Sequence record: NC_070966.1
Reading direction: 5' to 3' (one strand)
DNA length: 64,000 nucleotides
Shown piece by piece: positions 4,599-36,759 of this stretch. Made by a program: the position numbers and the translations under genes. The notes below the pieces were generated by a model that was given only the letters and a program-made list of their open reading frames with translations, did not search any database and was not told the DNA's origin. Position 1 is the first letter of the stretch. Every line of letters begins with the position of its first letter.

Positions 4599-4626
4599 AG
4601 CGAAGAGGAGGGTGCATAGCCTTCCT
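4599..4626 (+). promoter_or_regulatory. conserved intergenic motif, copy 1 (AGCGAAG-N11-TAGCCTTCCT)
   Basis: AGCGAAG aggagggtgca TAGCCTTCCT just after a stop codon; same 11-nt spacing in six copies. Confidence 0.6.
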
Positions 4627-4635
4627 CTCTTGTCA

Positions 4636-4725
4636 GGAGAGGTGGCCGAGTGGTTGAAGGCACCTGACTACTAATCAGGCATACGAGCAATCGTATCGTG
4701 GGTTCGAAACCCACCCTCTCCGCCA
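4636..4725 (+). tRNA. tRNA-Ser(ACT)
   Basis: Acceptor GGAGAGG/CCTCTCC plus GCCA; anticodon arm CCTGA-CTACTAA-TCAGG; long variable arm; T loop TTCGAAA. Confidence 0.9.
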
Positions 4726-4747
4726 ATTATTAAGAATTGACTTACAT

Positions 4748-5170
4748 ATGTCTATTAGTTTGTATAACTACAAGATCAACGTCATTCGAGTTATCGATGG
4801 CGATACGATTTATGCAGAAATTGATCTAGGATTCAATATTCGCATCAAAGATTACATTCGATTTGATGGAGTTGATACTCCTGAGACTCGAGGATCGACA
4901 GCTACTGATTTAGGTCAGTGGGCTAAGATGTATACTAGTCTTTGGCTCAGAGGTCTTGAGGGACAATTTGATGAGTTGAAGACTCTGAATCTGGATGAGG
5001 CTTGGTCTAAAGTACCTCGTTCGGATACAGGTCCATGGCTTACTAATCTTTATCTGGATAGTAAATCATACAATGACCGTGAGAAATACGGTAGGATCCT
5101 CGGATATATCTATCGTAATGAAGCTCTATCTTTGAATACCAGACTGATTCAAGAAGGTCTCAAGAAGTAG
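4748..5170 (+). CDS. thermonuclease (SNase-like)
   Basis: VIRVIDGDT ... IRFDGVDTPE ... DREKYGRILG motifs. Confidence 0.85.
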   Translation: MSISLYNYKINVIRVIDGDTIYAEIDLGFNIRIKDYIRFDGVDTPETRGSTATDLGQWAKMYTSLWLRGLEGQFDELKTLNLDEAWSKVPRSDTGPWLTNLYLDSKSYNDREKYGRILGYIYRNEALSLNTRLIQEGLKK

Positions 5171-5263
5171 GAGAATTCTAATGGGTGACGATTCTAGCAT
5201 CATACTTTAACCTGTAGGTTCATACAGAAGAGGATCTCCTCTTTACCTACAGGTAAGGAGAGT

Positions 5264-5548
5264 ATGATGGATAAGTTCAATAGAGCAGTACGTAGACATC
5301 ATCGTAAACGTCTACGTGAAAATAGAAAGATTTACCATGGAGGACTCCAATGGGTGATCGATCGTGAGAAAGCTAAATCTTTCAGAGTAAATACTCCTAC
5401 GCCATGTTCATGTCATATGTGTGGCAATCCTCGTAAGTTCTTTAAAGAACTCACAATTCAGGAGCGTAAATTCGCCTTAGATTACGCGAAGTCGAGCTCC
5501 ATTAACCTTCCTTATTGTCAGGAGGAATTGTCCTCCGATGATTTCTGA
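5264..5548 (+). CDS. small basic hypothetical protein with a CSCHMC motif
   Basis: SD 'aaggagag' upstream; Arg/Lys-rich; PCSCHMCGNPRK. Confidence 0.7.
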   Translation: MMDKFNRAVRRHHRKRLRENRKIYHGGLQWVIDREKAKSFRVNTPTPCSCHMCGNPRKFFKELTIQERKFALDYAKSSSINLPYCQEELSSDDF

Positions 5549-5573
5549 ACCACTGAAAACTTATTCGGTTGGA

Positions 5574-5604
5574 TTCAGCGAAGTCAGGGTTGGTTAGCCT
5601 TCCT
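5574..5604 (+). promoter_or_regulatory. conserved intergenic motif, copy 2
   Basis: TTCAGCGAAG tcagggttggt TAGCCTTCCT. Confidence 0.6.
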
Positions 5605-5679
5605 TGTTACGAGGTCGAGGTTTTCGATCTTGAAGAATTCGATTTTTAGAGTACAAGTTTATAAAGAATCTCGTAATAT

Positions 5680-5756
5680 GTACGCTTAACTCAGCTGGAT
5701 AGAGTAGCGACCTTTTAAGTCGTTGGTCATCGGTTCAAGTCCGATAGCGTACACCA
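5680..5756 (+). tRNA. tRNA-Lys(TTT)
   Basis: GTACGCT/AGCGTAC-ACCA; anticodon loop CTTTTAA. Confidence 0.95.
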
Positions 5757-5798
5757 TATTGCATACATTAGAAGACATAGTTTTTAGAGTAAATTTTG

Positions 5799-5876
5799 AG
5801 TGGTGTGCCTGTACCTATGGTACAGAGTGCTCGGAGATCCTCAGGTAGTTGGCGACTTGAGGATCTCTGCTACACT
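5799..5876 (+). ncRNA. candidate small structured RNA (two hairpins in a closing stem)
   Basis: CTGTACC/GGTACAG and GAGATCCTCAGG/CTTGAGGATCTC hairpins, weak AGTG/CACT closure, between two tRNAs. Confidence 0.35.
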
Positions 5877-5883
5877 TTATGAC

Positions 5884-5961
5884 GGTCCTGTACGTTCAAT
5901 TGGATAGACGGCTGGATTTCTACTCCGGAGGTTGGGTGTTCGAGTCACTCCAGGATCGCCA
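5884..5961 (+). tRNA. tRNA-Arg(TCT)
   Basis: GGTCCTG/CAGGATC-GCCA; loop TTTCTAC. Confidence 0.92.
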
Positions 5962-5979
5962 TAAATTGTAGGTTATATT

Positions 5980-6618
5980 ATGGAATGCCCTTATTGTTCT
6001 AAGCTCTTTAAGAGTGAGAGATCAATGTCTGGACATAAGGGATTCTGTAAATCAGGACCCTATCGTGCAGATACGATTGATCGTAATGCAAAAGCTAAGT
6101 TTAAATTAAGAAAAGTCAGACAACCTAGAGGTGTCGACAAGAGGACTCTTCCTGCGTCTTGTAAATTCTGTGACCGAGAATTTGAAAATCTATTTCAGAA
6201 GAATGGTCATCAAGTTAGATGTGAGAAGAATCCTAATCCAGCTGAATCGTCAGGTCCAATAGGATATAAACACACTGAAAGTACTCGAAAGAAGCTCTCT
6301 GACGCTCGAAGAGCCTTCCTTATTGAGAACCCAGATAAGCAATTCTTCAATTATCGTGATTCTAAAGCAGAGCACGATCTTGCTAAGAAATTTGATGAAG
6401 TAGGTATCCTCTACGTAAGACAGTATCGAGGATCTGACTGGAAGAGAGCTTACAAGGCAGACTTCTATCTTCCAGAGTTTAATTACATCATTGAAGTTAA
6501 TGGTGAGTTCAAGTATGAGAACGGTAAGCTGCATCAGTATTACCTAAACCGACAGAGATATATTGAATCATTTGGATATAAAGTGATTCAAGTACACGCG
6601 TATGAAGTGTACGAGTAG
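5980..6618 (+). CDS. free-standing putative homing endonuclease: two Cys/His zinc fingers plus a DUF559/Vsr-like PD-(D/E)XK domain
   Basis: CPYC...H..FC and CKFC...H..RC repeats; 'YKADFYLPEFNYIIEVNGEF...QRYIESFGYKVIQV'. Confidence 0.75.
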   Translation: MECPYCSKLFKSERSMSGHKGFCKSGPYRADTIDRNAKAKFKLRKVRQPRGVDKRTLPASCKFCDREFENLFQKNGHQVRCEKNPNPAESSGPIGYKHTESTRKKLSDARRAFLIENPDKQFFNYRDSKAEHDLAKKFDEVGILYVRQYRGSDWKRAYKADFYLPEFNYIIEVNGEFKYENGKLHQYYLNRQRYIESFGYKVIQVHAYEVYE

Positions 6619-6635
6619 TTAAAGTACATCTTGGA

Positions 6636-6907
6636 CATAGCTAGTGAGTTGGTTCTTCGTGAGTCATATCGTTTCTCCTTTCGGTATGAGTGTATGACAA
6701 GCTATGAGTTCTGGCATTCTATCTACCTTTAATCCTTTTCTGTAGATAGAATAACGCACGCGTCAAGATGTTATCCTCGAAAGTCAGACAGAGGATCTCA
6801 GTTTTATAATCTAGATAACGATATGCCCGATCGTTATGTTCCAGTAAGATCAAGTCTTCCTCCCAGACGTCACTCATTCCCCTCTTGAGTTTATCTTAAC
6901 GCACGCG
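6636..6907 (+). ncRNA. candidate structured RNA with pyrimidine-rich loops and two TAACGCACGCG repeats
   Basis: Hairpins TCATATCG/CGGTATGA, ATTCTATCTAC/GTAGATAGAAT, ATAACGAT/ATCGTTAT, GTCT/AGAC, ACTCA/TGAGT; identical 11-mers at 6752-6762 and 6897-6907; no ORF. Confidence 0.5.
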
Positions 6908-6956
6908 CTAGATTATAGGTCTCTGAAAACTGGACAGGAGACCATCAGTTCACTAG

Positions 6957-7043
6957 GGAGTCAGAAGTATGTAATTCCTTGTCTTACCTGGAGGTCACAT
7001 GCGGGTGATCTCGGTTACTTTGAGGTTTACTACTTCTGACTCC
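6957..7043 (+). ncRNA. candidate rod-shaped small RNA
   Basis: 13-bp terminal stem GGAGTCAGAAGTA/TACTTCTGACTCC enclosing GTAATT/GGTTAC and GAGGTCAC/GTGATCTC stems. Confidence 0.5.
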
Positions 7044-7055
7044 TGCCGGATTTAT

Positions 7056-7131
7056 TCTAGGTTAGCCAAGTTGGTAAGGCACGAGTTTTTGGTGCTCGCA
7101 TACCTAGGTTCGAACCCTAGACCTAGAACCA
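7056..7131 (+). tRNA. tRNA-Gln(TTG)
   Basis: TCTAGGT/ACCTAGA-ACCA; arm CGAGT-TTTTGGT-GCTCG. Confidence 0.92.
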
Positions 7132-7176
7132 CTTTTTAGATGTTGATTAAGTTCCGTCTAACAATGAGAGAATACA

Positions 7177-7434
7177 ATGAGTAAAGCATCTGAAGTTATC
7201 AAGAAGCTGAATGAGACTAAACCTTCAGAAGATCTTCTGAAGAGCGAGGTCCAGGAAATTAAGCAGAAGATGATTAATCAAGGCATCGTCAGACCTGACT
7301 ATGCTGTTGAAAGATTTAGTCTGGTTAGTGATAGATTCAGAAATGTCTTGATACACGGTATTGTTCATGGAACAAATACTGCAGGATGGAGAGATCAGAT
7401 TAAAGATTTGAGATCTCAGAATTTGATTAGTTAG
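7177..7434 (+). CDS. hypothetical protein, MSKAS...NE N-terminal tag family
   Basis: N-terminus MSKASEVIKKLNE; its stop codon abuts tRNA-Gly. Confidence 0.7.
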   Translation: MSKASEVIKKLNETKPSEDLLKSEVQEIKQKMINQGIVRPDYAVERFSLVSDRFRNVLIHGIVHGTNTAGWRDQIKDLRSQNLIS

Positions 7435-7508
7435 CGGACGTAACTCAGAGGTAGAGTGCAATCCTTCCAAGTTTGAAGTCGTGGGTTCGATTCCCATCGT
7501 CCGCTCCA
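7434..7508 (+). tRNA. tRNA-Gly(TCC)
   Basis: GCGGACG/CGTCCGC-TCCA; loop CTTCCAA. Confidence 0.95.
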
Positions 7509-7509
7509 T

Positions 7510-7586
7510 GCATCCTTAGCTCAGTTGGTTAGAGCATCAGTTTTACATACTGAGGGTCACTAGTTCAAGTCTAGTAGGATGTACCA
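7510..7586 (+). tRNA. tRNA-Val(TAC)
   Basis: GCATCCT/AGGATGT-ACCA; loop TTTACAT. Confidence 0.95.
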
Positions 7587-7605
7587 GTTATATTAAACTA
7601 TTCGT

Positions 7606-7681
7606 GGGAGATTAGTTCAGTGGTTAGAACCGTCAGCTCATAACTGATTAAACAGAGGTTCGAATCCTCTATCTCCTACCA
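7606..7681 (+). tRNA. tRNA-Met or Ile2 (CAT)
   Basis: GGGAGAT/ATCTCCT-ACCA; loop CTCATAA; Met versus lysidine-Ile cannot be resolved by eye. Confidence 0.9.
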
Positions 7682-7684
7682 AGT

Positions 7685-7761
7685 ACCACCTTAACTCAGA
7701 TGGATAGAGTACTCGACCGATAATCGAGTTGTCATTGGTTCAAGTCCAATAGGTGGTACCA
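7685..7761 (+). tRNA. tRNA-Ile(GAT)
   Basis: ACCACCT/AGGTGGT-ACCA; loop CCGATAA. Confidence 0.93.
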
Positions 7762-7779
7762 ACTTTTATTGAGTAGATA

Positions 7780-8367
7780 ATGAAGTGCAGTTATTGTGAA
7801 ACTGAGTTTAGACATCTGAGTCGACATGTTAGATATTGTCCTCAGAATCCTGACAGAATTGTCAAGTTAAATCAGTTCTCTAAGGCTGAGTCATTAGGCT
7901 TACCTAAGCCGCCATTGTCTGAGAAATCTCGGAGAATGACTACTGAAAGAAATGCATCTCGAGTATGGACTCCAGAGATCAGATCTAAATTATCTAAGAG
8001 TATGATTAAGTACTTTAAAGATAATCCTGAAGCTCATCCGTACTTAAAGTATCATTCAAGTGGTGAATCATATGCTGAAGGATTCTTTCGAGAATTCTTT
8101 TTAAGTCATGATTTATCATTCAAACAAGAGTTGCAGGTTGGTCTCTATACACTTGACTTCGCATTTGAGGACAAGATGATTGATGTAGAGATCAACGGTA
8201 ACTTTCACTATAATAATCCTGGAATTGTTGAGAAAGATCAACGACGAAGACTCTTCTTGGAAGAGCGTGGATGGACTATTATAGAAGTTCGATGGTCTGA
8301 GTATAAGAAGATGAATGAGTCAGAGCGATCTGATTATCTGAATTCCTTATTATCTCAACTATCCTGA
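7780..8367 (+). CDS. free-standing putative homing endonuclease (zinc finger plus DUF559/Vsr-like domain)
   Basis: CSYC...H..YC; 'QVGLYTLDFAFEDKMIDVEINGNFH...DQRRRLFLEERGWTIIEV'. Confidence 0.8.
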   Translation: MKCSYCETEFRHLSRHVRYCPQNPDRIVKLNQFSKAESLGLPKPPLSEKSRRMTTERNASRVWTPEIRSKLSKSMIKYFKDNPEAHPYLKYHSSGESYAEGFFREFFLSHDLSFKQELQVGLYTLDFAFEDKMIDVEINGNFHYNNPGIVEKDQRRRLFLEERGWTIIEVRWSEYKKMNESERSDYLNSLLSQLS

Positions 8368-8443
8368 CGCGGGATGGCGCAGTCGGTAGCGCGCAAGAGT
8401 CATAATCTTGAGGTCGAGGATTCGAGTTCCTCTCCCGCAACCA
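8368..8443 (+). tRNA. tRNA-fMet-like (CAT)
   Basis: C1:A72 mismatch (CGCGGGA/TCCCGCA-ACCA); loop GTCATAA; anticodon stem CAAGA/TCTTG. Confidence 0.85.
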
Positions 8444-8449
8444 GTTTCA

Positions 8450-8640
8450 GTTAACGAGGCCACCGTATCTAGATTAATCTACCTCACAGGTATCTAGATC
8501 GTAGTGAGTTTGAGCGGAGCAGTCTTAACTGCATCGTTGTGGTCCCATCGATAATGCGGTCCTGAGATGGGATAGGACTCTATCTGAGTGCACAAGGATA
8601 GATGCACCTAAGCGGTCTCTGCGATGAGATCCACCGCTCC
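8450..8640 (+). ncRNA. candidate multibranch structured RNA
   Basis: GAGCGG(8512)/CCGCTC(8634) closes four hairpins (GCAGT/ACTGC, TCCCATC/GATGGGA, CTATCT/GGATAG, GGTCTC/GAGATC); upstream ATCTAGAT pair; no ORF. Confidence 0.5.
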
Positions 8641-8704
8641 ATAATCTGTAATCTTGATGTGAACAGTGTCGTAGATATCTCATCAGTAATATCGAGTTAA
8701 TGAG

Positions 8705-9205
8705 ATGATGTATATCCGATACGCTTTATACTTACCAGTTAATCTACTACTTGTACTGTCAGCATATGTGTTCTCACCTATTCTAGCAGCACTTTCTCTT
8801 GTCACCGGTCCTACGCTTCCTGGAGTACTTCAATGGTTCTCTACTACGGATGACGATTTAGATGGTGGAATTCATCAAAATGTCTCAGGTTATAAGTCTG
8901 GACTCAAAGGATTCTCACTATGGTGGCAACGTACATGTTGGATCTGCAGAAATCCTGCTCATGGGTGGCAGTCTAACTTACTAGGCATGTCTGTTGATGG
9001 ATTCGAATTTATCGAGAAGATCGATATTTCTACTCCTAAATGGTATCTGATGAAGAACAACAAGCATACGTTCTTCATGTGGAAGAAGGATCAACGTCTC
9101 TTCTCCAAGTACTATCTGAAACTATGGTTCGGATGGCTGAATACTGCATATGATGGTAAGAATCATCATTATGAATTTCAGATTGGATTGAAGAGTAAGA
9201 ATTAA
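8705..9205 (+). CDS. hypothetical membrane protein
   Basis: Hydrophobic N-terminal helix; Trp-rich 'WWQRTCWICRNPAHG'. Confidence 0.75.
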   Translation: MMYIRYALYLPVNLLLVLSAYVFSPILAALSLVTGPTLPGVLQWFSTTDDDLDGGIHQNVSGYKSGLKGFSLWWQRTCWICRNPAHGWQSNLLGMSVDGFEFIEKIDISTPKWYLMKNNKHTFFMWKKDQRLFSKYYLKLWFGWLNTAYDGKNHHYEFQIGLKSKN

Positions 9206-9206
9206 C

Positions 9207-9294
9207 GACCCTGTGACGGAGTGGTTGAACGTGCCGGTCTGCAAAATCGGTGGCATGAATTTGTCCGCGAGTTCGAATCTCGCTAGGGTCTCCA
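9207..9294 (+). tRNA. tRNA-Cys(GCA) with a long variable arm
   Basis: GACCCTG/TAGGGTC-TCCA (U73); arm CCGGT-CTGCAAA-ATCGG; 16-nt variable region containing GGCA/TGTC. Confidence 0.85.
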
Positions 9295-9304
9295 AGGTTA
9301 AACT

Positions 9305-9415
9305 ATGAAGTATGCAATCATTCTAGCACTTCTTCTAGCAGGATGTCAATCTGCTGAAGAGCGTTACTATTCAGATTTGTCTACAGGTGTAGGCATGGTT
9401 CTAAAGGATAAATAA
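9305..9415 (+). CDS. small lipoprotein (36 aa; not in the ORF track)
   Basis: MKYAIILALLLAGCQS: signal peptide with LAGC lipobox; SD 'aaggt' upstream. Confidence 0.65.
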   Translation: MKYAIILALLLAGCQSAEERYYSDLSTGVGMVLKDK

Positions 9416-9532
9416 ATGTCAACTATTATTGTTGCAGTTGTAGCATTCATTGCAGGTGGATACGCTAGTAAGAATTTTGGATTCGATCTAGTTGAGTATG
9501 CCAAGGCTGCTTATAACAAGTTTAAGGCATAA
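9416..9532 (+). CDS. small membrane protein (38 aa; not in the ORF track)
   Basis: [19 protein letters not shown]...; ATG immediately follows the previous TAA. Confidence 0.6.
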
Positions 9533-9541
9533 TGCCTTTGT

Positions 9542-9618
9542 CGGAGCGTAGCGCAGCCAGGTAGCGCAATAGTTTTGGGTACTATGGGTCGTCTGTTCGA
9601 ATCAGACCGTTCCGACCA
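9542..9618 (+). tRNA. tRNA-Pro(TGG)
   Basis: CGGAGCG/CGTTCCG-ACCA; loop TTTGGGT. Confidence 0.95.
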
Positions 9619-9620
9619 AT

Positions 9621-9697
9621 ATTCCCTTGGACAAGCGGTTTAAGTCATCTCACTTTCACTGAGAAGATCACGGGTTCAAATCCCGTAGGGAATACCA
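9621..9697 (+). tRNA. tRNA-Glu(TTC)
   Basis: ATTCCCT/AGGGAAT-ACCA; loop CTTTCAC. Confidence 0.93.
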
Positions 9698-9699
9698 AT

Positions 9700-9730
9700 T
9701 TCAGCGAAGTTAGGCTCTTGTAGCCTTCCT
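9700..9730 (+). promoter_or_regulatory. conserved intergenic motif, copy 3
   Basis: TTCAGCGAAG ttaggctcttg TAGCCTTCCT. Confidence 0.6.
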
Positions 9731-9795
9731 TCTTGTATCGGTTAGTAGTGTCAATCCGAGCTATTAATGTGAGTATTAAGTATCGGATTCTATGA

Positions 9796-9892
9796 TCGAG
9801 AGTGGTGGAACGGTAGACACATCCAGATAAAAGAGCAGTTTCTGGACGCTACTTAAATATGCGTGCTAGTTCAAGTCTAGCCTCTCGAACCA
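9796..9892 (+). tRNA. aberrant Leu-type tRNA with a 14-nt anticodon loop (no assignable anticodon)
   Basis: TCGAGAG/CTCTCGA-ACCA, Leu-like D arm and long variable arm, normal T arm; anticodon arm TCCAG-ATAAAAGAGCAGTT-CTGGA. Confidence 0.7.
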
Positions 9893-9926
9893 ATATTATA
9901 TGCTCATTCTTAGATAGGGATTACCA

Positions 9927-10688
9927 ATGGGTAAATTACATGAAATCCTCGCGGTTGAAGGTGACCTCGTAGGTGTAGCCAAGAAAGTTACTGAAGAAGC
10001 TATCGCTACGTTCAGCAAGCGTGCAGATCACTTCAGTGAGACTACTACTGAACAGAAATACTTTGCAGACGATGAGCAGCATCTCAATACGTCTGAATCT
10101 AAGGCAATGGTGACCACTGTACCTGACAAGCTCAAGTACATCGTTGATCCTATTGCTAAGTTCTTCGATGCGTACTATTCGAAGGAAGCTACCAATCAGA
10201 TCGCTAAGGCTGACGTAGAAGTCAAGGGTACAACGATCTTTGCAGATGTTCCAGCAACGGTTCTCCTAGGTATGGAGACTAAGCTTCGTGAACTCCGTAA
10301 GGTCTATGAATCGATTCCGACTCTCGCTCCTGGTGTATTCTGGGAGAAGGATGTTAATCGTCCGGCAGGTGTATACCGTGCTCGTGAACCTGAAGTCCGA
10401 TTCGTTACGAAGAAGACTGTACGTCCGATCACTCTTTCACCTGCTACTGACAAGCATCCTGCTCAGATTGAGAAGGTCAATGAAGATCTTCCTGTCGCTA
10501 AGAAGACGATTACTACCTGGAGTAGTATGATGTCGTCAGCTGACAAGAGCAAGGTCCTCGAACGTATCGATACTCTGATCCGTGCAGTTAAGACTGCTCG
10601 TCAGCGTGCAAACGGTACTGAGGCAGTATCTGCTTCATCCTTCGGTGATAAGATTTTCGACTTTATCCATCAAGGTATCGTCGACTAA
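9927..10688 (+). CDS. conserved-looking hypothetical protein (253 aa) followed by structured RNAs
   Basis: Strong ORF with SD; 'LSPATDKHPAQIEKV' and 'AVKTARQRAN' resemble a bacterial family I recall as DUF7873-like (unverified). Confidence 0.75.
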   Translation: MGKLHEILAVEGDLVGVAKKVTEEAIATFSKRADHFSETTTEQKYFADDEQHLNTSESKAMVTTVPDKLKYIVDPIAKFFDAYYSKEATNQIAKADVEVKGTTIFADVPATVLLGMETKLRELRKVYESIPTLAPGVFWEKDVNRPAGVYRAREPEVRFVTKKTVRPITLSPATDKHPAQIEKVNEDLPVAKKTITTWSSMMSSADKSKVLERIDTLIRAVKTARQRANGTEAVSASSFGDKIFDFIHQGIVD

Positions 10689-10736
10689 GAATTGAATGTT
10701 GAGGCTACCAGCATAGCCTCCATTCTCCGACTCCCA

Positions 10737-10826
10737 TAGGGACAAACTCAGCCTTAAACTTATTGTGAGTATCAAGAATTTATCTTCTGCTCAAGATAAA
10801 CAAACTAGCTTTGTATCCCTAAAACT
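10737..10826 (+). ncRNA. structured segment with four AAACT repeats
   Basis: TAGGGAC..AA/TTTGTATCCCTA closure; AAACT at 10744, 10756, 10802, 10822; inner TTTATCTT/AAGATAAA hairpin. Confidence 0.4.
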
Positions 10827-10847
10827 TAGACAAGATTTACCAGATCT

Positions 10848-10990
10848 AGTCGTAGCATATCTCTATTTTCCCGGAAGGTCGTGAGTTCGAGTCTCATCAC
10901 CGCACCCAATTACCTACAATTGGACTGATGCGGTGTAGCTCAGTGGTAGAGCGTTCGTTTTATCTTGAAGATATCCTATCGATGATGACT
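10848..10990 (+). ncRNA. divergent Y-RNA-like RNA with a circularly permuted tRNA module
   Basis: T arm GTGAG-TTCGAGT-CTCAT, then acceptor CACCGCA...TGCGGTG closed internally, then D arm TAGCTCAGTGGTAGAGC; outer ATATCT/AGATAT and AGTCGT/ATGACT stems. Confidence 0.7.
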
Positions 10991-11142
10991 GTATGAATCT
11001 ATCGTAACGATTAAATATGCTCCGCGATAGGAGTGTATGTTACATTAACAAGAACAGGGTGGTTCCATGCGGAATGTGGTTCCACCCACCTCTTCTTATA
11101 TAAGATCATTCGGATTTTATATAATAAGAATTTGAGGTTTAC

Positions 11143-11430
11143 ATGAGTAAGGCATCAAGATTACTTAGCAAGATCAATGAATTGGACGGTGGATCTAAGG
11201 ACCCACTGGTTCAATCAGGTTGTGCTAAGATTGTAGCTTATTGTCAGAAGAAGAGTCTTAGTGCTACTGAGATTGAGCAGATTAAGGATCAGATTCTTGA
11301 CGACGAGCCTCTTCACAATCATACTGCAGATACACTAGCTGCAATCGGTCTTGATATGAATATCAAGTCTGAGCTTGTAGCGATTGGTCTCAGTAGTGAT
11401 GAAGCTGATGCGATTATGAATGTAACCTAA
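11143..11430 (+). CDS. hypothetical protein, MSKAS...NE tag family
   Basis: MSKASRLLSKINE; SD 'gaggt'. Confidence 0.75.
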   Translation: MSKASRLLSKINELDGGSKDPLVQSGCAKIVAYCQKKSLSATEIEQIKDQILDDEPLHNHTADTLAAIGLDMNIKSELVAIGLSSDEADAIMNVT

Positions 11431-11437
11431 CAGACAT

Positions 11438-11511
11438 GCTCCTATAGTTAAGTGGTATAACTCCTGTTTTGTAATCAGGGTTCCTCAGTTCGATTCTGGG
11501 TGGGAGCACCA
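11438..11511 (+). tRNA. tRNA-Thr(TGT)
   Basis: GCTCCTA/TGGGAGC-ACCA; loop TTTGTAA. Confidence 0.92.
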
Positions 11512-11563
11512 TGATTTCTTGAATCCTAACTCATAGTGAGTTAGAGATAACAAGGAAGATAAA

Positions 11564-11860
11564 ATGAGTGATGAAGTTAATAAGACTGTCGTAACTAGAG
11601 AAGAACATCGAGGTACTGCTTGTAAGTACTATGATACTCGTGGTAAAGCATACGATGCTATTATCACTGAAGTATGGGGACCTCAATGCGTCAACCTTGT
11701 CTATGTCAATGATGTAGAAGGTCAGAAAGATTCTTATGGTCAGAAATTGATCAGATCATGTTCTGTGATGCATGGTAGTGTTCAGCAAGCTCATGGCAAC
11801 TATTGGATGTTACCAGGAGAGACTCGAGTTTCTAAATATGTTCATGATTCAGCTATTTAA
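11564..11860 (+). CDS. hypothetical protein
   Basis: SD 'aaggaag'; compact ORF. Confidence 0.75.
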   Translation: MSDEVNKTVVTREEHRGTACKYYDTRGKAYDAIITEVWGPQCVNLVYVNDVEGQKDSYGQKLIRSCSVMHGSVQQAHGNYWMLPGETRVSKYVHDSAI

Positions 11861-11925
11861 TTAACTTCTGTGATCTTCCGACCTTGACGCGACGAAGTAG
11901 CAGATAACTTATAAACTTTCTTGTT

Positions 11926-12513
11926 ATGTTTTATACTATCTATCGAATAACCAACAATGTTAACAGTAAGATATATGTTGGTATGCACCAGACTACTAAT
12001 TTAGATGACGGTTATATGGGATCGAGCAGATTATTGTTCAATGCTATGAAGAAGCACGGTCCTGATAACTTCTCTAAAGAGATTCTACATGTCTTTGATA
12101 ATAAAGAAGACATGTTTAGTATGGAAGCACAGATAGTAGACGAACAATTTGTTAAAAGATCTGATACATACAACCTAAAGACAGGTGGAGTAGGATCTTT
12201 TAGCTACATTAATTCATCTCCTGAATTTCGACAAAGGTCAATTTCAAGAATTCGTGAATTATGTAAGTCTGATACACCGTATCGTAGAATTCAATCTAAT
12301 AAATTGAAAGATGTTCGATACGATTTCACTGGTCATAAGCATACTGAAGAATCGATCTCTAAGATGAAAATATCTAAGGTCGGTCACGGAGAGGGTTCTT
12401 CGAATTCTCAGTATGGGACGATCTGGATTAATAATGGAGTGAAGAACTCTAAACTTAAATCTAATCTACCTATTCCAGATGGTTGGAGTAGAGGTAGAAA
12501 GATGGGCTTGTAG
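11926..12513 (+). CDS. GIY-YIG homing endonuclease (Seg-like, NUMOD3-type C-terminus)
   Basis: 'TIYRITNNVNSKIYVGMH...YMGS', 'TYNLKTGG', 'GHKHTEESISKM', 'NSQYGTIWINNG'. Confidence 0.9.
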   Translation: MFYTIYRITNNVNSKIYVGMHQTTNLDDGYMGSSRLLFNAMKKHGPDNFSKEILHVFDNKEDMFSMEAQIVDEQFVKRSDTYNLKTGGVGSFSYINSSPEFRQRSISRIRELCKSDTPYRRIQSNKLKDVRYDFTGHKHTEESISKMKISKVGHGEGSSNSQYGTIWINNGVKNSKLKSNLPIPDGWSRGRKMGL

Positions 12514-12578
12514 TGATAACGGGAGCACGATGCCTTTGCACGGCATAGGACAGGGTTCGATTCCCTGCTAGTCCACCA
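12504..12578 (+). tRNA. tRNA-Ala(TGC)
   Basis: GGGCTTG/CTAGTCC-ACCA with G3:U70; loop TTTGCAC. Confidence 0.93.
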
Positions 12579-12630
12579 CATTAGGTCGTATCAACCTGAG
12601 GTTAACCGTAGTTACTCAAACTGATACAAT

Positions 12631-12717
12631 GGGATTTCAGACGTGTTGGAGTGCGATCGGCAGACTGTAAATCTGTCCTCTTAGAGCTACTAGGTTCGAA
12701 TCCTAGAAGTCCCACCA
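12631..12717 (+). tRNA. tRNA-Tyr(GTA)
   Basis: GGGATTT/AAGTCCC-ACCA; loop CTGTAAA; long variable arm. Confidence 0.9.
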
Positions 12718-12722
12718 TATTT

Positions 12723-12764
12723 ATAGCCTCATATCGGAGCAATCTGGTATGAGGCTATTTCTTT
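12723..12764 (+). terminator. probable intrinsic terminator
   Basis: ATAGCCTCATATCGGA-GCAA-TCTGGTATGAGGCTAT followed by TTCTTT. Confidence 0.7.
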
Positions 12765-12838
12765 CATGTTAAAGAGAGGGGCGATGTATTATGATCGTTA
12801 CGACATCTTCTAGGTAAAACAACCTAGGAGTATAAAGC

Positions 12839-13141
12839 ATGAAGTCGCATTATATTAAGTCTGAGAAGTTTCGTTGGAATCGAGACGATAAGATCGAATA
12901 TATTTACAAGCTCAGAGCTGGTAATTATTACCGTGATCTTAAGACCTTTCAGGAGATCTCTGCGAATGAGTTCGTTAAGTTTGATCCTGACTGTATCGAG
13001 TATAAGATTCCTCCTCGTTATGGACGACTTAATCATTACTTGAACAAGTGGAATCTTGAGAGATTTCCTTCTAAGTCTTATAAGAAGTCTTGGAAGTTTG
13101 CTCACAGATGCCGTAAGCAATGGATGATCAATCTTGAATAA
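12839..13141 (+). CDS. hypothetical basic protein
   Basis: SD 'aggag'; overlaps the next ORF. Confidence 0.7.
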   Translation: MKSHYIKSEKFRWNRDDKIEYIYKLRAGNYYRDLKTFQEISANEFVKFDPDCIEYKIPPRYGRLNHYLNKWNLERFPSKSYKKSWKFAHRCRKQWMINLE

Positions 13142-13319
13142 GATGACATTCGATGATTGGTGTGATCAGGTCGATACTGTAGCGAGTAAAGCTATGGGAG
13201 GACCTGAATCATACACTAAGGCCACTGGCAGAGAATGCTGGATGGATATGTATAACGATGGATTCACTCCTGAAGATGCATGGACTGAAGAGTCTTTATG
13301 TATTCAGGAGTCCCTTTAA
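13134..13319 (+). CDS. hypothetical protein
   Basis: Small acidic ORF overlapping the previous stop. Confidence 0.65.
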   Translation: MNKMTFDDWCDQVDTVASKAMGGPESYTKATGRECWMDMYNDGFTPEDAWTEESLCIQESL

Positions 13320-13337
13320 TTCTAGATGGATAAGTTA

Positions 13338-13481
13338 ATGAATTTTCTCGGTAAAATCTTTTCTGCAGATTCTAAGAAGCTGGATGACGCGAAGGCTCTT
13401 CTTGCAGAAGTAACTGCATCGAAGAATCGTATCATCAATAATGATCTTAAGGGTCGTATTGAGACTTTCTTGAGTGCATGA
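13338..13481 (+). CDS. small hypothetical protein (47 aa; not in the ORF track)
   Basis: MNFLGKIFSADSKKLDDAK...; 'ggataag' upstream. Confidence 0.55.
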   Translation: MNFLGKIFSADSKKLDDAKALLAEVTASKNRIINNDLKGRIETFLSA

Positions 13482-13520
13482 GATAGAAGGCTAAAAGACG
13501 CGAATTATTCGCCTAGATTG

Positions 13521-13548
13521 AGCGAACTTAGCGTCTGATAGCCTTCCT
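13521..13548 (+). promoter_or_regulatory. conserved intergenic motif, copy 4 (3' arm of a long hairpin at 13486-13546)
   Basis: AGCGAAC ttagcgtctga TAGCCTTCCT; inverted partner GAAGGCTA..AGACGC..TTCGC upstream. Confidence 0.55.
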
Positions 13549-13565
13549 TCTTTGTCAGACGGTGA

Positions 13566-13641: not shown

Positions 13642-13664
13642 GTCTGCTTATAAAGGATTCTTAG

Positions 13665-28800: not shown

Positions 28801-29183
28801 AACATCTATTCGAGACGATTGATACTGTTCTCGAAACTGCAGTTGATCTACCTAAGCGTAGATTTAATCTTCCGATGAAGATCGACTGGGAAATCGGTGT
28901 TAATCAGTCTGATGCAATTGAGTTCAAAGAAACATCTCGATTTGATGAAGGTCGAGGTCGTACGTATCACTTTGAATGCAATGAAAATGCAATGATGCCT
29001 GTATTCGATCGTCTAAAGAACTACTTTGACATCGAATATGAAGTCACTTCTAGAGAGACTGAGAGAGCATCGCTGAAAGAAATGTTCGTTGCAAGACGAG
29101 CATTCTCTAAGTATCTTGGTACAGATGTAACCGTCGTAGGTGGTAACCTCAAACTAGTGAAGAAAAATGGGATAAAAATATGA
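25854..29183 (+). CDS. family A DNA polymerase with an N-terminal uracil-DNA-glycosylase-like (family 4) domain and 3'-5' exonuclease
   Basis: UDG: CHMC, GEAPA, 'NVIMCQP', HPSY; exonuclease: FDYEGT, 'FHDAM', 'YCCYDS'; polymerase: DYSQAEVRILA, RRYAKVCSFSILYG, NWPIQS, THDS. Confidence 0.92.
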   Translation: MSLEIESIINKVDLTSDVRVCHMCPLAEKFGGCDNLGRVSFEIVGQNPKVLLVGEAPAAEDLKSERPFSSQSGSFLRMAMAEIGINDYALANVIMCQPKSVNIYTPTPEESAHCKAHIQRFVEKYKPETVILLGRGAYEVILPESYFAGQSVTNVTKKKAIEIDGVRYGAAFHPSYIFRNGGKESPQYIDFLNRLRRLTQNSVDAEFIVPFKIVNLDQLDETLEEFDVYKELGFDYEGTSLDPYDVNYQVLGLGMSSMDKAVYIDFHREPTQEEKNKISDFIRKKQMWVYNVNYETKVTWSKLSNDLIRFHDAMTLVKIDCSPGSLKDNARKYLNAEIWEEIVGNLTTLFYDIFQFMKKIEEKSPKLYNACRQANMEAIYLLKEDTAEKITGGKKNPKVTRYRTKQADHADYISAKISALREFCSDEDIQRGFTKFPYEWAAVPPKILGEYCCYDSYYTLGLKNHLWDKYKSVYQYYITQGWLGSTMESYGLNWDDDKASEHERFYLVEATTCLNQIIQKLDFGEKTLDIHTRASMIFNDSSLPDARKLIDLKGIFNPGTPDKLKQKPFWDKYVTDFTTAISIYLVLSEQILMSPIIPDQAIELVDRQDLNKAIENLMSVDWTKYDGVDLKTAKSIQKLMMDLIGTLDEKIGWKLYAFRSDVLEWQYKAHETYGGLDIDNRETWTPEFELLYLLRRYKKVEKSKNTYINGKVGRARVWLSTVDDYQKPPVRLKRYFDVMEERQWKKYELQHNERWILDTEFNVAGANTKRWKAAIHTVPWGSELREIYASRWWDGLFMHYDYSQAEVRILAAISQDRALLEAFADPDTDIHMFVASRIWKKDPKDVTPAERRYAKVCSFSILYGKSIEGFATEHTKGDVAAAKRIFDDFYAAFPQVKEWIEKQHRDAKVSGKVFTLFGDPLYLDMSDPNGAMRDAQNWPIQSSSSCVAGWAIWMNYEFSRNRNIPILPMVFTHDSHDMEFRCQHLFETIDTVLETAVDLPKRRFNLPMKIDWEIGVNQSDAIEFKETSRFDEGRGRTYHFECNENAMMPVFDRLKNYFDIEYEVTSRETERASLKEMFVARRAFSKYLGTDVTVVGGNLKLVKKNGIKI

Positions 29184-29911
29184 GTCGAGCAAAATCACTG
29201 ATCGACATGATTAAAGGAACCAAGAACGAGTCTGGTGACGATGACGACGAAATCTCAAATCGTCGTCGTGGTGGTACTTGGATTGATCCTCATCATGTTG
29301 ACGCAGCATCCAAGAATCTGAAGCGTACTCAGTCATTCTACAAGAAGGCTAGTAATGCTAGCTCAGTTGAAGATCAAGAGTATTGGTTAGCTCGAGTCTT
29401 TAACAAGAATGCTGTTGCTAAGAGAATCTCCTCTGGATTCTATAACAAGGAAGCTAAGGCAGGAGTCGTAGGCGTCGATGACGTTGAAGATCTGTCAGCA
29501 TCTCTTGTTACAGGTAATCCAAGAGCATCGGGTCGTGTTACGACTAAGGATCACACACGTAATCCTGAAGAGATCTTTGCTGCTAACCAGATCGTTAAAG
29601 CTCTCTACGATACGATTGACAAGAAGTGGCCTGGACGTCCTCAGAACAAGATGGTTCTGACATACTTCCTCAAGGTCAATAAAGCTGATCATCTTATTAA
29701 CTTTAAGCTTCCATACGATGATCGTGTGGAAGAAATCATCTCTTCTATTGAGAAATATGCTAAAGACAATAACTCCAAGATTACTTGGACTACTCCTAAG
29801 CAGTTTCAGAATTTTTCAGGTATTGAAGACAGAATGTATGCAAAGGTCATGCAGTTCCTAGCAGATAATGCTGTAGAATTGGGTGCTCTTATCATTCGAG
29901 GTAAGAAATAA
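29180..29911 (+). CDS. hypothetical protein (MSRA tag; possible divergent sigma-like C-terminal half)
   Basis: MSRAKSLIDMIK..KNE; 'NPEEIFAANQIVKALYDTI...KMVLTYF'. Confidence 0.75.
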   Translation: MSRAKSLIDMIKGTKNESGDDDDEISNRRRGGTWIDPHHVDAASKNLKRTQSFYKKASNASSVEDQEYWLARVFNKNAVAKRISSGFYNKEAKAGVVGVDDVEDLSASLVTGNPRASGRVTTKDHTRNPEEIFAANQIVKALYDTIDKKWPGRPQNKMVLTYFLKVNKADHLINFKLPYDDRVEEIISSIEKYAKDNNSKITWTTPKQFQNFSGIEDRMYAKVMQFLADNAVELGALIIRGKK

Positions 29912-30258: not shown

Positions 30259-30353
30259 AGGCGCTTACTTGTTGGGTAAATGGGTGCAGTTAGGCTCTTG
30301 GAGGGATTCTTATTCGGTGAGCCCTCCAAGGCTTCCAGAAAGAGGGTAATGTA

Positions 30354-31010
30354 ATGGCTAGCGATAGACAGATGAAAGGTTACATCTGGGGAGAGCAAAT
30401 CCTGGATCATGCTCACATTGAGCATTATGCAAGGGCGATGAGATCCGATGATGTACGTACCGAGGAGTACTGGTACCAGGCAGTATTTCATGGGAAGAAC
30501 CACTCTAAGGTTCTTCAGTCGGAAGTCTTTCATAAGAAAATCCGCAACAACGTTACAAATAAAGTAGAAGTTGAGACTCTGGTTTCTACTTCTAACTCTG
30601 ACGTCGTTAATGATGTTCTAGCAGAGGAGAGAAAGAATGAAGTAAAATATTCTCGAGTTATCGAGGATGATAAGGTCGGTAATATGTCCGACTATCTTCC
30701 CGATGCAACTGTTGGGTTCTCAGTTATTATCAGAGAAATAGCTGACAAATGCAACGATGATGAAATCAAGGTCCTGAGCTACTTTGTATGTCAGGAACAT
30801 CTGGATAATATCCTATTCGAGGGGAATTCGATTCATTCATCAAACGATCGCTTCAATCGTACGATCCTAGGTATCTGGGAAAAGAATGTGAAGAGCATCA
30901 ATGATCTGAATCGATTTGTAGGTACTCGTGCTCGTGCTGATAAAGCTAGGTGGAGACTCTGCAATCTCTTGAAGAAGGAGTATCCTGAACTCTTGTCAGG
31001 AAAACGATGA
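30354..31010 (+). CDS. hypothetical protein (possible divergent sigma region-4-like C-terminus)
   Basis: SD 'agaggg'; 'IIREIADKCNDDEIKVLSYF...RARADKARWRLCNLL'. Confidence 0.75.
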   Translation: MASDRQMKGYIWGEQILDHAHIEHYARAMRSDDVRTEEYWYQAVFHGKNHSKVLQSEVFHKKIRNNVTNKVEVETLVSTSNSDVVNDVLAEERKNEVKYSRVIEDDKVGNMSDYLPDATVGFSVIIREIADKCNDDEIKVLSYFVCQEHLDNILFEGNSIHSSNDRFNRTILGIWEKNVKSINDLNRFVGTRARADKARWRLCNLLKKEYPELLSGKR

Positions 31011-34642: not shown

Positions 34643-34645
34643 AGG

Positions 34646-34843
34646 ATGCAAGACCTATCTCAACTATGTGAAGTTGAGATGGAGAAGTTAGTTGAAATAC
34701 TAATGAGATCGACTCACTTGACACTCGACGGTGTTGAGCTGAGTCGATCTCATGAATATCATAATAGCCCATCTGTCTCTACAATTAAAACTCATAAAGT
34801 CCTTGATGACTCATACATTACAGTTAGACTGAAATATGTATAA
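34646..34843 (+). CDS. hypothetical protein
   Basis: Short ORF tightly packed after rpoC. Confidence 0.55.
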   Translation: MQDLSQLCEVEMEKLVEILMRSTHLTLDGVELSRSHEYHNSPSVSTIKTHKVLDDSYITVRLKYV

Positions 34844-35549
34844 CTTGCAATACGATGATGGAATTCTTAAATCAAATAGGGAGTCTCTCGTAAACATACG
34901 AGCTCCATTCTTCAAACGGATTGATCGACGATCTCGCAAGTCGTCCATCGAGAGATTAATGATCTCACCTGATACAACAAGAAATTGTAGTCAGATTAAG
35001 AGATTTCTCGTTCCGTTCAACGATAAGTACTTGTACAGCATGCATGTGACTTATCGTGACGACTTAAAGTGTCAATCTATTTATGACACTAACAAGTCTC
35101 TCAAGCGAATCCTCCGATCTAAAATGTTAATGTCAGCTGTGAACAGGATAAATGAGTATCCTCAACTCAAAGCAGACATATTGTCTGTAATCAAGCTTGT
35201 AGTTAATTCTTGGGAGTTTGATGGTCTTATCACAGACATTGAATGGCTCCAGGATGAAAATCTACTGGATACTGTGATATCTAAGTGGAAACTGAAGAAG
35301 TACGAATCCTCTACAGAGCGAGGGTCAGTGATCAATCTCTTAATAAAGAGTTTTGATGGAGTTCCACTTAATCTTCTATCTCATCTAGAGATGAAGAAAA
35401 TCAGTATTGAGGATACTGACATTGAGGACGTTAAGTTTAAATGTCCTCTGATATTAATGCGATCGAATTCATCTTGTGCAGGATTCATATCTAAGTCCTT
35501 GGATAAAGGACTACCTGTGAGTCTGTTCAAGATTGATATAAAAGAGTAA
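34836..35549 (+). CDS. hypothetical protein
   Basis: Long ORF ending at a bidirectional terminator. Confidence 0.75.
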   Translation: MYNLQYDDGILKSNRESLVNIRAPFFKRIDRRSRKSSIERLMISPDTTRNCSQIKRFLVPFNDKYLYSMHVTYRDDLKCQSIYDTNKSLKRILRSKMLMSAVNRINEYPQLKADILSVIKLVVNSWEFDGLITDIEWLQDENLLDTVISKWKLKKYESSTERGSVINLLIKSFDGVPLNLLSHLEMKKISIEDTDIEDVKFKCPLILMRSNSSCAGFISKSLDKGLPVSLFKIDIKE

Positions 35550-35605
35550 AAATAAAGGCCACTAGGCGGACCCTTCTCGGAGGATTCACCTAGTGGCCTA
35601 TTTTT
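35550..35605. terminator. bidirectional intrinsic terminator at the strand switch
   Basis: AGGCCACTAGG...CCTAGTGGCCT with an A-run before and a T-run after, between convergent genes. Confidence 0.8.
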
Positions 35606-35610
35606 GTGTC

Positions 35611-35865
35611 TTATGGAAGAAGTGGTACGAAACTCTTCAGCTTATTGTACACATCATCCTGCTTACCCATTTCAGTCGAATACTTATCAAGAATCGTCTG
35701 ATTATCTGGGAATTCATTACCTTGATTAGCTACCCAGTCGACATAATCATGCCAATCCTGGTCATCGTGAAGATCACGATGCTGCTTAATCAGATTTGCA
35801 TATTCAGCATCTGTGAATTCATGCAATGATGAAAGCTTCTCAAGAATGTCTTTAGCTCTACTCAT
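35611..35865 (-). CDS. hypothetical protein, MSRA tag family (second Met chosen)
   Basis: MSRAKDILEKLSSLHE. Confidence 0.7.
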   Translation of the reverse strand: MSRAKDILEKLSSLHEFTDAEYANLIKQHRDLHDDQDWHDYVDWVANQGNEFPDNQTILDKYSTEMGKQDDVYNKLKSFVPLLP

Positions 35866-35876
35866 ATTAATCTCCG

Positions 35877-36332
35877 TCAAGCTACTACAGCGAGTTCATT
35901 ACTTGGTACTTCATGAACGTCACCATCGACTTCGATCATGCAGATTTCACCGTTCACTTTAAGAACAGTGCCTGTACCGTGAACTGATTCAACAGTGTTA
36001 TTAAGAAGGATCTCACGACCATTCTTATCTTCGCATTCGATGAATGCTCTCTGACCATTGTCAGGAGTGTAATCAGGAGCTTTACCTGTTACGCCATCTG
36101 CATTCACATTGTTCCAGTGACCGTATGCGTCAAAGTATAGTACGTCGAGATCCGAACTATCTTGGAACTTGTCACGTTCAGCCATAGCATCCTTGAAAGG
36201 CATTGCTAGAGGACCTAGGATAACTTTATTGTTGGTACGATTAACAATGTACGTACCAATGCGTTTACTGGTATCTTCGTCGATACCTGTGATCTTTGAC
36301 AGATCACTAATCAGACCTGATGCTCTGCTCAT
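35877..36332 (-). CDS. hypothetical protein, MSRA tag family
   Basis: MSRASGLISDLSKI. Confidence 0.75.
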   Translation of the reverse strand: MSRASGLISDLSKITGIDEDTSKRIGTYIVNRTNNKVILGPLAMPFKDAMAERDKFQDSSDLDVLYFDAYGHWNNVNADGVTGKAPDYTPDNGQRAFIECEDKNGREILLNNTVESVHGTGTVLKVNGEICMIEVDGDVHEVPSNELAVVA

Positions 36333-36360
36333 ATTAAATATCCTTGTTAGCGTTTATGAC

Positions 36361-36660
36361 TTAGAGACCAGCAGCCTTGCGCTTTCTCATAGTCATTTGA
36401 CGCTTACGAGAGATAGCAGCTTGCTGTCCTCTCTTCTTACGAGCACCCATCTTCGCAGCCTTACGCTTAGCGATGATCTCACCGGCACTCATCTTGACGC
36501 AAGTCTTACCATCAATCTTGTAACCTGGAGGGCAATCAAGAATAACACTCTTGGCTCCACCTCTGAATGTTACTTTCTTCTTAGGAGCAGCTTCACTAGC
36601 TGGAATAGAAGACTCATAGTAAGCATCAATTTTAGTGATCAAATCTGCAGATTTAGACAT
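36361..36660 (-). CDS. putative prohead core protein (T4 gp68-like)
   Basis: Highly basic C-terminus 'KRKAAKMGARKKR...RKRQMTMRKRKAAGL' resembling T4-type gp68; N-terminus MSKSADLITKIDAYYE. Confidence 0.6.
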   Translation of the reverse strand: MSKSADLITKIDAYYESSIPASEAAPKKKVTFRGGAKSVILDCPPGYKIDGKTCVKMSAGEIIAKRKAAKMGARKKRGQQAAISRKRQMTMRKRKAAGL

Positions 36661-36728
36661 AATGTACATCCATTTTAGTTTATTTAATGAGGATTATCAC
36701 TTTACACAATTATAAAGTGTGCACAAAG

Positions 36729-36759
36729 AGGAAGGCTTATGTCGCCTTCCTTCGCTGAA
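36729..36759 (-). promoter_or_regulatory. conserved intergenic motif, copy 6 (minus strand)
   Basis: Reverse complement TTCAGCGAAG gaaggcgacat AAGCCTTCCT, co-oriented with the minus-strand genes. Confidence 0.6.

Follow-up and report, generated by a model that had tools for sequence, protein, structure and literature searches.

What reads the short two-block motif that recurs between the genes of a 64,000-nucleotide stretch of phage DNA (here called the window), and to what end? The motif, AGCGAAR followed after 11 nucleotides (nt) by DAGCCTTCCT and designated class 1 below, was first noticed in six copies. The window corresponds to bases 124001–188000 of Rhizobium phage RHph_TM30 (MN988521.1; 100% match), a member of Kleczkowskaviridae, Cuauhnahuacvirus, with a 207,623 bp genome, and the motif analysis covered this complete record. 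We predict, with a probability of roughly 0.6, that class 1 is a phage-directed, non-sigma-70 promoter class of TM30. From 1 to 159.5 kb the genes lie on the plus strand and comprise many small early open reading frames (ORFs), then genes for nucleotide metabolism and replication and 20 tRNAs, and from 159.6 to 206.9 kb the structural and lysis genes lie on the minus strand, the structural genes bearing T4-type names in the annotation.

The window contains five exact matches to AGCGAAR-N11-DAGCCTTCCT (0.00 expected from shuffles) and seven matches when up to two mismatches are allowed (0.03 expected); all seven keep the 11-nt spacing and are co-oriented with the neighbouring genes (Table 1). 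The six copies of the original prediction are all real—five exact, and that at 13521 with one mismatch—and they are, as it said, intergenic according to the deposited annotation, co-oriented, and separated by exactly 11 nt between the blocks; its starts at 5574, 9700 and 25120 were counted from the TTC of TTCAGCGAA and denote the copies placed here at 5577, 9703 and 25123. It missed the seventh copy, which lies within the 3′ end of an ORF. Four copies share the opening (A/T)TTCAGCGAA that had been reported for them. Three stand directly 5′ of tRNA genes, which argues against a translational role.

Table 1. Class-1 copies and related features, in window coordinates; PWM, score with the class-1 position weight matrix.
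Feature	Position	Strand	Remarks
Class-1, AGCGAAG-N11-TAGCCTTCCT	4599–4626	+	3 nt past stop of ORF 3073–4596, 10 nt 5′ of tRNA-Ser (4636); PWM 37
Class-1, CGCGAAG-N11-TAACCTTCCT	5485–5512	+	2 mismatches; in last 64 nt of ORF 5267–5548, 37 nt before stop; PWM 46
Class-1	5577–5604	+	Exact, intergenic; 76 nt 5′ of tRNA-Lys (5680); PWM 54, best in genome
Class-1	9703–9730	+	Exact; 6 nt past tRNA-Glu (9697), 197 nt before ORF 9927; AGGCT/AGCCT hairpin inside
Class-1, AGCGAAC	13521–13548	+	1 mismatch; 18 nt 5′ of tRNA-Asn (13566); spacer without hairpin
Class-1	25123–25150	+	Exact; between ASCH gene and 5′-deoxynucleotidase/DNA polymerase A operon (polymerase fused to uracil-DNA glycosylase)
Class-1	36729–36756	-	Exact; 5′ of 'prohead core' gene (36669/36660–36361)
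Weak class-1-like, AGCCTTCCT core without GCGAA box	6294–6319	+	Inside homing-endonuclease ORF 5980–6618; PWM 17.7
Weak class-1-like, AACGAA-N13-AGACTTCCT	20363–20388	+	Status uncertain; in NAD ligase gene, 275 nt 5′ of primase start; PWM 18.7
Class-2, TAGGTTCAGTT-N11-AAGGGATTCCTCCTTGAAGG	18708–18750	+	Directly after terminator 18651–18693; GGGATTC core 38 nt before NAD ligase start
Class-2, TGGGTGCAGTT-N11-GAGGGATTCTTATTCGG	30281–30325	+	5′ of gene 30354–31010 and β′ operon; the 'longer variant' of the original prediction
243-amino acid (aa) paralog of 218-aa protein	29180–29911		Downstream of polymerase gene
218-aa protein, uncharacterised family	30354–31010	+	Always beside β′; candidate specificity factor (speculative)
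RNA polymerase β′ homolog, 1127 aa	31259–34642	+	Rpb1 domains 1–5; catalytic NADFDGD at 417

A genome-wide search raised the number of copies from six to about 30. The core A[AG]CCTTCCT occurs 31 times in TM30, and neither its orientation nor its location is random: 31 of 31 cores run in the direction of local transcription (binomial p = 9e-10), and 23 of them lie in non-coding DNA, which as called here makes up 9.1% of the genome (p = 5e-18). GCGAA stands exactly 13 nt 5′ of the core in 16 copies, and the class-1 matrix built from these finds about 30 sites. Copies with both blocks in full occupy 61–161 kb and position 207355, and in the early region the 5′ block of most copies is degenerate. 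No other 7-mer is as widespread in the 146 intergenic gaps as CCTTCCT, which is present in 23, and the core most often stands 27–33 nt from the start codon that follows. Many of the gaps bearing the motif measure only 50–60 nt; once it and a ribosome-binding site are accommodated, no room is left for another promoter. The copy at 207355 is found in a gene-free region of ~820 bp between divergent gene blocks, where the series of plus-strand genes begins; it has no co-oriented gene on its 5′ side and an AT-rich repeat tract on its 3′ side.

Comparison with a sister phage, Y65 (98.7% identical to TM30 over the stretch compared), shows which parts of the motif are held constant. Across 21 orthologous class-1 copies the two blocks differ at 2 of 285 positions, against 86 of 2565 in the spacers and 60-nt flanks (Fisher p = 0.005); the 3′ block has no differences in 180 positions, and both block changes fall in one degenerate copy. 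The two blocks are under purifying selection and substitutions in the spacer are tolerated, the spacing being fixed while the spacer sequence varies.

The motif extends beyond these two phages. Relatives were reached through homologs of the TM30 RNA polymerase β′ subunit (Table 1), and from these to syntenic metagenomic contigs. In contig L116 (β′ 55% identical), GGCGAA-N13-AGCCTTCCTTATT occupies the gap 5′ of the same YfbR (5′-deoxynucleotidase)/PolA operon as copy 25123, with a spacer unrelated to that of TM30 and no hairpin, and GCGAA-N13-AGCCTTCT is present on the minus strand at the late-region site equivalent to copy 36729. Contig L114 (53%) keeps AAGCCTTCTTATT 5′ of the polymerase gene, and both it and contig rel5 follow the pattern AGCCTTC(C/T)T. 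In rel5 (β′ 41%, 39 kb) there are six AGCCTTCCT cores on the plus strand and zero on the minus strand, including cores in the gaps before a polymerase-like gene and before a ligase; the core of copy 25123 is kept at the orthologous position in L116, L114 and rel5. Vibrio phage Va2, with a β′ only 28% identical, has eight co-oriented copies of GAACCT-N4-5-AACCTTGCTYCTTGAAT 5′ of genes within 27.5 kb, seven of them intergenic, and its core AACCTTGCTYCTTG is in register with the TM30 AGCCTTCCTTCTTGT (profile similarity 10.6 at offset 0, no more than 7.7 elsewhere). Two further phages, RP13 of Ralstonia and EP_H11 of E. coli, possess their own conserved intergenic motifs, some of which resemble the second class described below; the likeness to class 1 is weaker, comprising only ACCTTG, in RP13. 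Because the 3′ block is kept in relatives down to Va2, we regard it as the ancient core, and the GCGAA box, seen only in TM30 and its nearest relative, is on these alignments specific to a lineage or class. Searches of IMG/VR for relatives of the β′ protein returned none, and no close relative of TM30 is present there; a scan of that database for GCGAA-N13-AGCCTTCCT gave 104 contigs with one match each, which we take as chance. A loose count of [AGC][AGC]CCTT[CG][CT] across clades was uninformative, and the promoter features in the GenBank record of YerA41 are merely predicted sigma-70 boxes.

Class 1 is not the only repeated signal in the genome. A second class, TAGGT(T/G)CA(C/G)TT-N11-A(A/G)GGATTCTTCTTTGAAGGG, has 17 copies, all 17 on the plus strand just 5′ of gene starts and mostly in the 0–62 kb early region. 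Examples across the genome are those at positions 27, 14352, 27051, 44172, 58583, 62233 and, farther on, 107296. The two classes have in common a GTTAGG spacer start and a TTCYTYCTTG tail. The stretch 30289–30336, originally taken for a longer variant of the class-1 motif, does share GTTAGGCTCTTG with the third copy (9703), but it belongs to class 2. Class-2-like motifs (GTTCTTTTGGG and then a GC-rich run) also occur in L116, L114, rel5, EP_H11 and RP13. The late genes have TTTATAT/TATAAT-type boxes upstream that resemble T4 late promoters; such sites were seen at the capsid gene, at gene 384, and at the gene downstream of copy 36729 (window 36669–36728, minus strand). Class 1, class 2 and the late boxes together suggest a genome with three or more signal classes arranged by region, the usual layout of temporal promoter classes. 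In the gene-free region (genome 207200–207623 plus 1–83) the order is class-1 motif (207355), AT-rich tract (~207560–207623), class-2 motif, an order reminiscent of origins in T4, at which replication is primed from a middle promoter beside an unwinding element.

The promoter reading best accounts for the co-orientation, the intergenic placement, the 27–33 nt distance, the selection confined to the blocks, and the conservation at orthologous positions. A protein complex would recognise both blocks from the same face of the DNA helix, their centres being ~20 bp apart; the 3′ block, A(G/A)CCTTCCT(Y)nTT, would be the core element that is deeply conserved in related phages, and (A)GCGAA, exactly 13 nt 5′ of it, an auxiliary or class-specific element. 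Expression downstream would depend on GCGAA, AGCCTTCC and the 13-nt spacing, and transcription would begin a few bases 3′ of CCTTCCT, giving leaders of ~20–25 nt, or starting a few nt ahead of the tRNAs. In the 52–160 kb 'middle' part of the genome class 1 would drive the genes for replication and nucleotide metabolism, the clusters of tRNAs and a small number of other genes; class 2 dominates the early region and precedes the β′ operon, and the late genes have the T4-late-like TTTATAT boxes. The reader is probably not the plain host sigma-70 holoenzyme. The motif has no -35 TTGACA-like and -10 TATAAT-like hexamers 16–18 nt apart, and sigma-70-like sites are not enriched (48 against 53.8 expected in window positions 1–20000), which bears out the initial statement that this is no sigma-70 consensus; by eye rather than by a formal comparison, neither the block sequences nor the spacing fits a sigma-54, extracytoplasmic function (ECF) or RpoH-like consensus.

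A likelier reader would be a phage-redirected polymerase involving the β′ homolog, perhaps together with a specificity factor. The TM30 β′ matches Salmonella RpoC with 33.6% identity across 957 aa (E = 2e-143) and, judged from its domains and catalytic motif, is probably active; we treat it as a candidate component of the enzyme that reads the motif. The link is drawn from the co-occurrence of the core with β′-encoding phages: the core is common to phages of unrelated hosts that have the same gene set, which makes a phage-specified polymerase likelier than a host sigma factor. That a phage RNA polymerase reads the motif, as first proposed, is plausible in this light. Four metagenomic relatives (stretches of 11–39 kb) have the same β′ neighbourhood and no gene with a β-subunit Pfam match, and no Rhizobium phage is among the RpoB matches listed (60 of 89 records).

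Beside β′ there is always a member of an uncharacterised protein family (the 218-aa gp325 in TM30), of which there are 76 representatives among 1.8 billion proteins. Va2 encodes a homolog (E = 1e-14), and EP_H11 gave a weak match. TM30, L116 and L114 have both this protein and its 243-aa paralog, and L118 and L119/rel5 show only the β′-adjacent copy. TM30 has as many of these paralogs as it has promoter-like classes, perhaps by coincidence. Comparison of the 218-aa family with PDB sequences and Pfam profiles gave nothing significant (best match a MarR protein, E = 0.034); AlphaFold models of the two conserved β′ neighbours are of low confidence (predicted local distance difference test, pLDDT, 59 and 48), Foldseek found nothing in PDB at E < 1 for the 218-aa model, the one searched, and Pfam and PHROGs gave no convincing sigma-like or MotA-like match among the β′ neighbours.

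Several findings weigh against a promoter read by such an enzyme. A tblastn search of the 207.6-kb genome with RpoB gave nothing at E < 1 (a very divergent β could escape it), so that any polymerase of the phage would need host subunits to complete it; the lone β′ suggests such a hybrid enzyme, and no report of a hybrid of phage β′ and host subunits was found in the literature searched. Nor did the literature on the family, the genus, the phage name and the consensus strings contain anything relevant. Pfam and PHROGs revealed no sigma-like or MotA-like factor in 41 mostly larger proteins (39 unassigned proteins of at least 140 aa and two small annotated regulators; the others below 140 aa, the size range of AsiA, lie outside this set). 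The sole match, to Sigma70_r4 at E = 0.0068 in one member that is possibly a Cro-like helix-turn-helix protein, was not convincing. The conserved β′ neighbours, as described above, have no recognisable fold. Some of the transcription is left unexplained by the two classes, since neither is found at several genes located after terminators. Many copies begin within 10 nt of the upstream stop codon or overlap it, and about a third form a hairpin with a pyrimidine-rich run behind it; an element at RNA 3′ ends or processing sites would look alike. Finally, three class-1 copies outside the window are followed 10–70 nt downstream by a strong intrinsic terminator, which is odd for a simple mRNA promoter. 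These class-1/terminator pairs (genome 17542–17635, 64837–64945 and 81591–81645) could define short RNAs of ~40–90 nt or promoter-proximal attenuators.

The last of these points are equally those expected if the motif acted in RNA, as a processing, stabilising or antitermination site in long polycistronic transcripts; an RNA-binding protein or nuclease of the phage would bind the blocks, and the hairpins would protect upstream 3′ ends. Two window copies are flagged by a terminator scan as a hairpin with a T-rich tail, and many strong terminators in TM30 are followed by a gene without room for a promoter, which implies that read-through and processing must be common. The spacer also tends to complement the 3′ block: when the 31-nt segments of 27 copies were folded against versions with shuffled spacers the combined Z was -5.2, with heterogeneous contributions. 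The pairing originally described as usual is therefore a tendency: of the 27 copies, about 8 pair strongly (stems at least as stable as -8 kcal/mol) and about 8 have no hairpin, and there is no covariation. RNAalifold found no consensus structure in a gap-free alignment of 20 copies; the AGGCT/AGCCT helix is paired in 63%, like shuffled controls, the register slid by one in 73%, and only one cell is compensatory. The tendency to pair arises because a semi-conserved purine patch in the spacer (tAGG) faces the invariant pyrimidine block. The hairpin is accordingly treated as non-essential, and neither a hairpin-type promoter—one of the forms first suggested—nor a structured RNA fits the evidence, the L116 orthologue at the polymerase operon having no hairpin at all. 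In an Rfam scan of the window only tRNAs reach the gathering score, and the motif matches no family. Rigid spacing around a free spacer is typical of DNA recognition, and the copy at 207355 has no co-oriented upstream gene to supply a transcript. The processing or antitermination alternative is weakened by these results, and we consider a site acting in RNA unlikely.

A hairpin before the pyrimidine run TCCTTCTTGT would also describe an intrinsic-type terminator or pause site. Copies do lie at gene ends, and 2 of the 7 in the window pass a lax terminator scan (4607–4624 and 9712–9726), none with a T-run. Most copies, however, have neither a stable GC-rich stem nor a U-run, what is conserved is the linear blocks and not a stem, and true TM30 terminators are different and much stronger, with stems of 10–20 pairs followed by TTTT; copies also stand 10–18 nt before tRNAs and head the gene-free region. 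Termination as the function of the motif is very improbable. The layout of a terminator and then a motif was found at 3 of 25 predicted terminators, a weak association.

A further view of the motif, in which no initiation takes place at it, is suggested by the differences between TM30 and Y65: the DNA could be bound, as an operator or activator site, by a regulatory or architectural protein of the phage, or it could be a hot spot of recombination at the edges of gene cassettes, much as in the PeSL/PmSL cassettes of T4-like phages, which join a promoter and a stem-loop (Arbiol 2010, PMC2839356; Comeau 2014, PMC4122927). Of 14 indel or replacement breakpoints in 50–150 kb, 5 adjoin a class-1 copy where ~1 is expected. 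The TM30 copies 5485 and 5577, which are 92 nt apart, are one copy in Y65, the result of duplication in one phage or deletion in the other through recombination between motif copies, and a homing-endonuclease gene is inserted directly after the copy at genome position 118506 in TM30 only. In some copies AGGCT-N5-AGCCT inverted repeats resemble the sites of dimeric proteins. Yet the motif as a whole is asymmetric, with the inverted repeat in a minority of copies, and co-orientation of 31 of 31 cores at a constant distance from start codons points to the transcription machinery. Published PeSL/PmSL promoter cassettes sit at cassette boundaries as well (PMC4122927), so that the boundary position is no argument against a promoter. 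We judge a role as a regulator site or hot spot without initiation to be quite unlikely. One TM30/Y65 indel breakpoint adjoins the weak site at 6294.

A more specific form of the phage-directed promoter involves the DNA itself. The DNA polymerase A of TM30 (25854–29183) has an N-terminal uracil-DNA glycosylase (UDG) domain (Pfam UDG, E = 8e-19), an architecture described for the SP15-like polymerases of phages with hypermodified thymidine (PMC13697223), and the TM30 genome may on this account carry modified T. One could imagine an undescribed transcription system in which classes 1 and 2 are the promoter code of a clade with UDG-fused SP15-like polymerases and probably hypermodified thymidine, the phage β′ replaces that of the host in an otherwise host-derived polymerase, and the two paralogs of 220–240 aa encoded just 5′ of the β′ gene (families gp323 and gp325) are class-specific factors that recognise, in modified DNA, cores of the A(R)CCTT(S)CT type. 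We regard this full scheme as doubtful.

How does a phage-directed class 1 compare with known systems? Phages such as SPO1 (gp28, gp33/34) and phiKZ and AR9 (non-virion RNA polymerase) recognize their promoters through phage specificity factors or multisubunit polymerases. TM30 resembles them in having a phage-specific, non-host consensus, several temporal classes, and a large genome with polymerase genes; they differ in possessing a sigma factor or a full β-like and β′-like set, whereas in TM30 only β′ was found and not the pair that characterizes the phiKZ/AR9 type, and the consensus is different.

In T4, the MotA box (a/t)(a/t)TGCTT(t/c)a lies 11–13 nt from a TAnnnT -10 element. T4 middle promoters combine this box at -30 with the -10 element and are used through sigma appropriation by MotA/AsiA (cited in PMC2988021, PMC4122927). 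The class-1 architecture is similar, with AGCGAA, 12 nt and (T/A)AGCCT in all copies, if the blocks are assumed to take the -30 and -10 positions; nAGCCT then keeps A and T where -11A and -7T would fall. As with T4 middle promoters, class 1 would serve replication and nucleotide genes and tRNAs, beside separate early and late classes. The sequences themselves are unrelated (GCGAA against the TGCTT box, AGCCTTCCT against the TAnnnT core), no MotA or AsiA match was found in the 41 proteins scanned (other proteins below 140 aa being outside the scan), and the TM30 core is conserved in phages whose hosts are unrelated and goes together with a phage β′, which is absent from T4.

Like the predicted class-1 promoters, the PeSL/PmSL cassettes are conserved repeats between genes in which a promoter is joined to a stem-loop that varies; both are concentrated in plastic regions, and class-1 copies edge indels and replacements between sister phages (the 5 of 14 breakpoints above). 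The stem-loop of PeSL lies 5′ of sigma-70-like -35 and -10 elements, and across the PeSL/PmSL cassettes the promoter is sigma-70-like or of Mot type, whereas the TM30 hairpins overlap spacer and core and occur in about a third of the copies, and the class-1 consensus is not sigma-70-like. Promoters of the N4 virion RNA polymerase depend on an obligatory DNA hairpin with a conserved stem and a 3-nt loop (PMC4496689). Some TM30 copies can form a stem of 5–8 bp with a 3–7 nt loop that includes conserved bases, but this hairpin is not conserved, shows no covariation, and varies in loop and register, and the TM30 record annotates no single-subunit virion polymerase.

Promoter classes of phages are a known kind of element, and the class-1 consensus matched nothing in the literature searched. 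Its core persists in Rhizobium and Vibrio phages and in uncultured relatives that have in common a stand-alone β′ gene and an unusual DNA polymerase, and points to a conserved, phage-encoded choice of promoters that is so far uncharacterised. The ~30 class-1 and 17 class-2 sites offer an experimental handle on the role of a lone β′, on a hybrid polymerase, and on the transcription of a possibly hypermodified genome, and the motif lets annotators mark transcription units in this phage family.

Two other features of the window are of note. Positions 15217–16410 contain about eight repeats (GTTGCGA-N13-TTACTTCG/CATCGC) interleaved with tRNA-like pieces, directly 5′ of a TROVE/Ro60-like gene (16406–17974); Rfam YrlA (Y RNA-like) matches below the gathering score fall at 15475–15589 (E = 6e-6) and 15654–15728 (E = 3e-6), and array and gene together are probably a phage Ro60 and Y-RNA module. 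Where the plus- and minus-strand genes converge, A-runs and T-runs flank a strong hairpin at 35555–35610 (GGCCACTAGG...CCTAGTGGCC), which probably terminates transcription in both directions.

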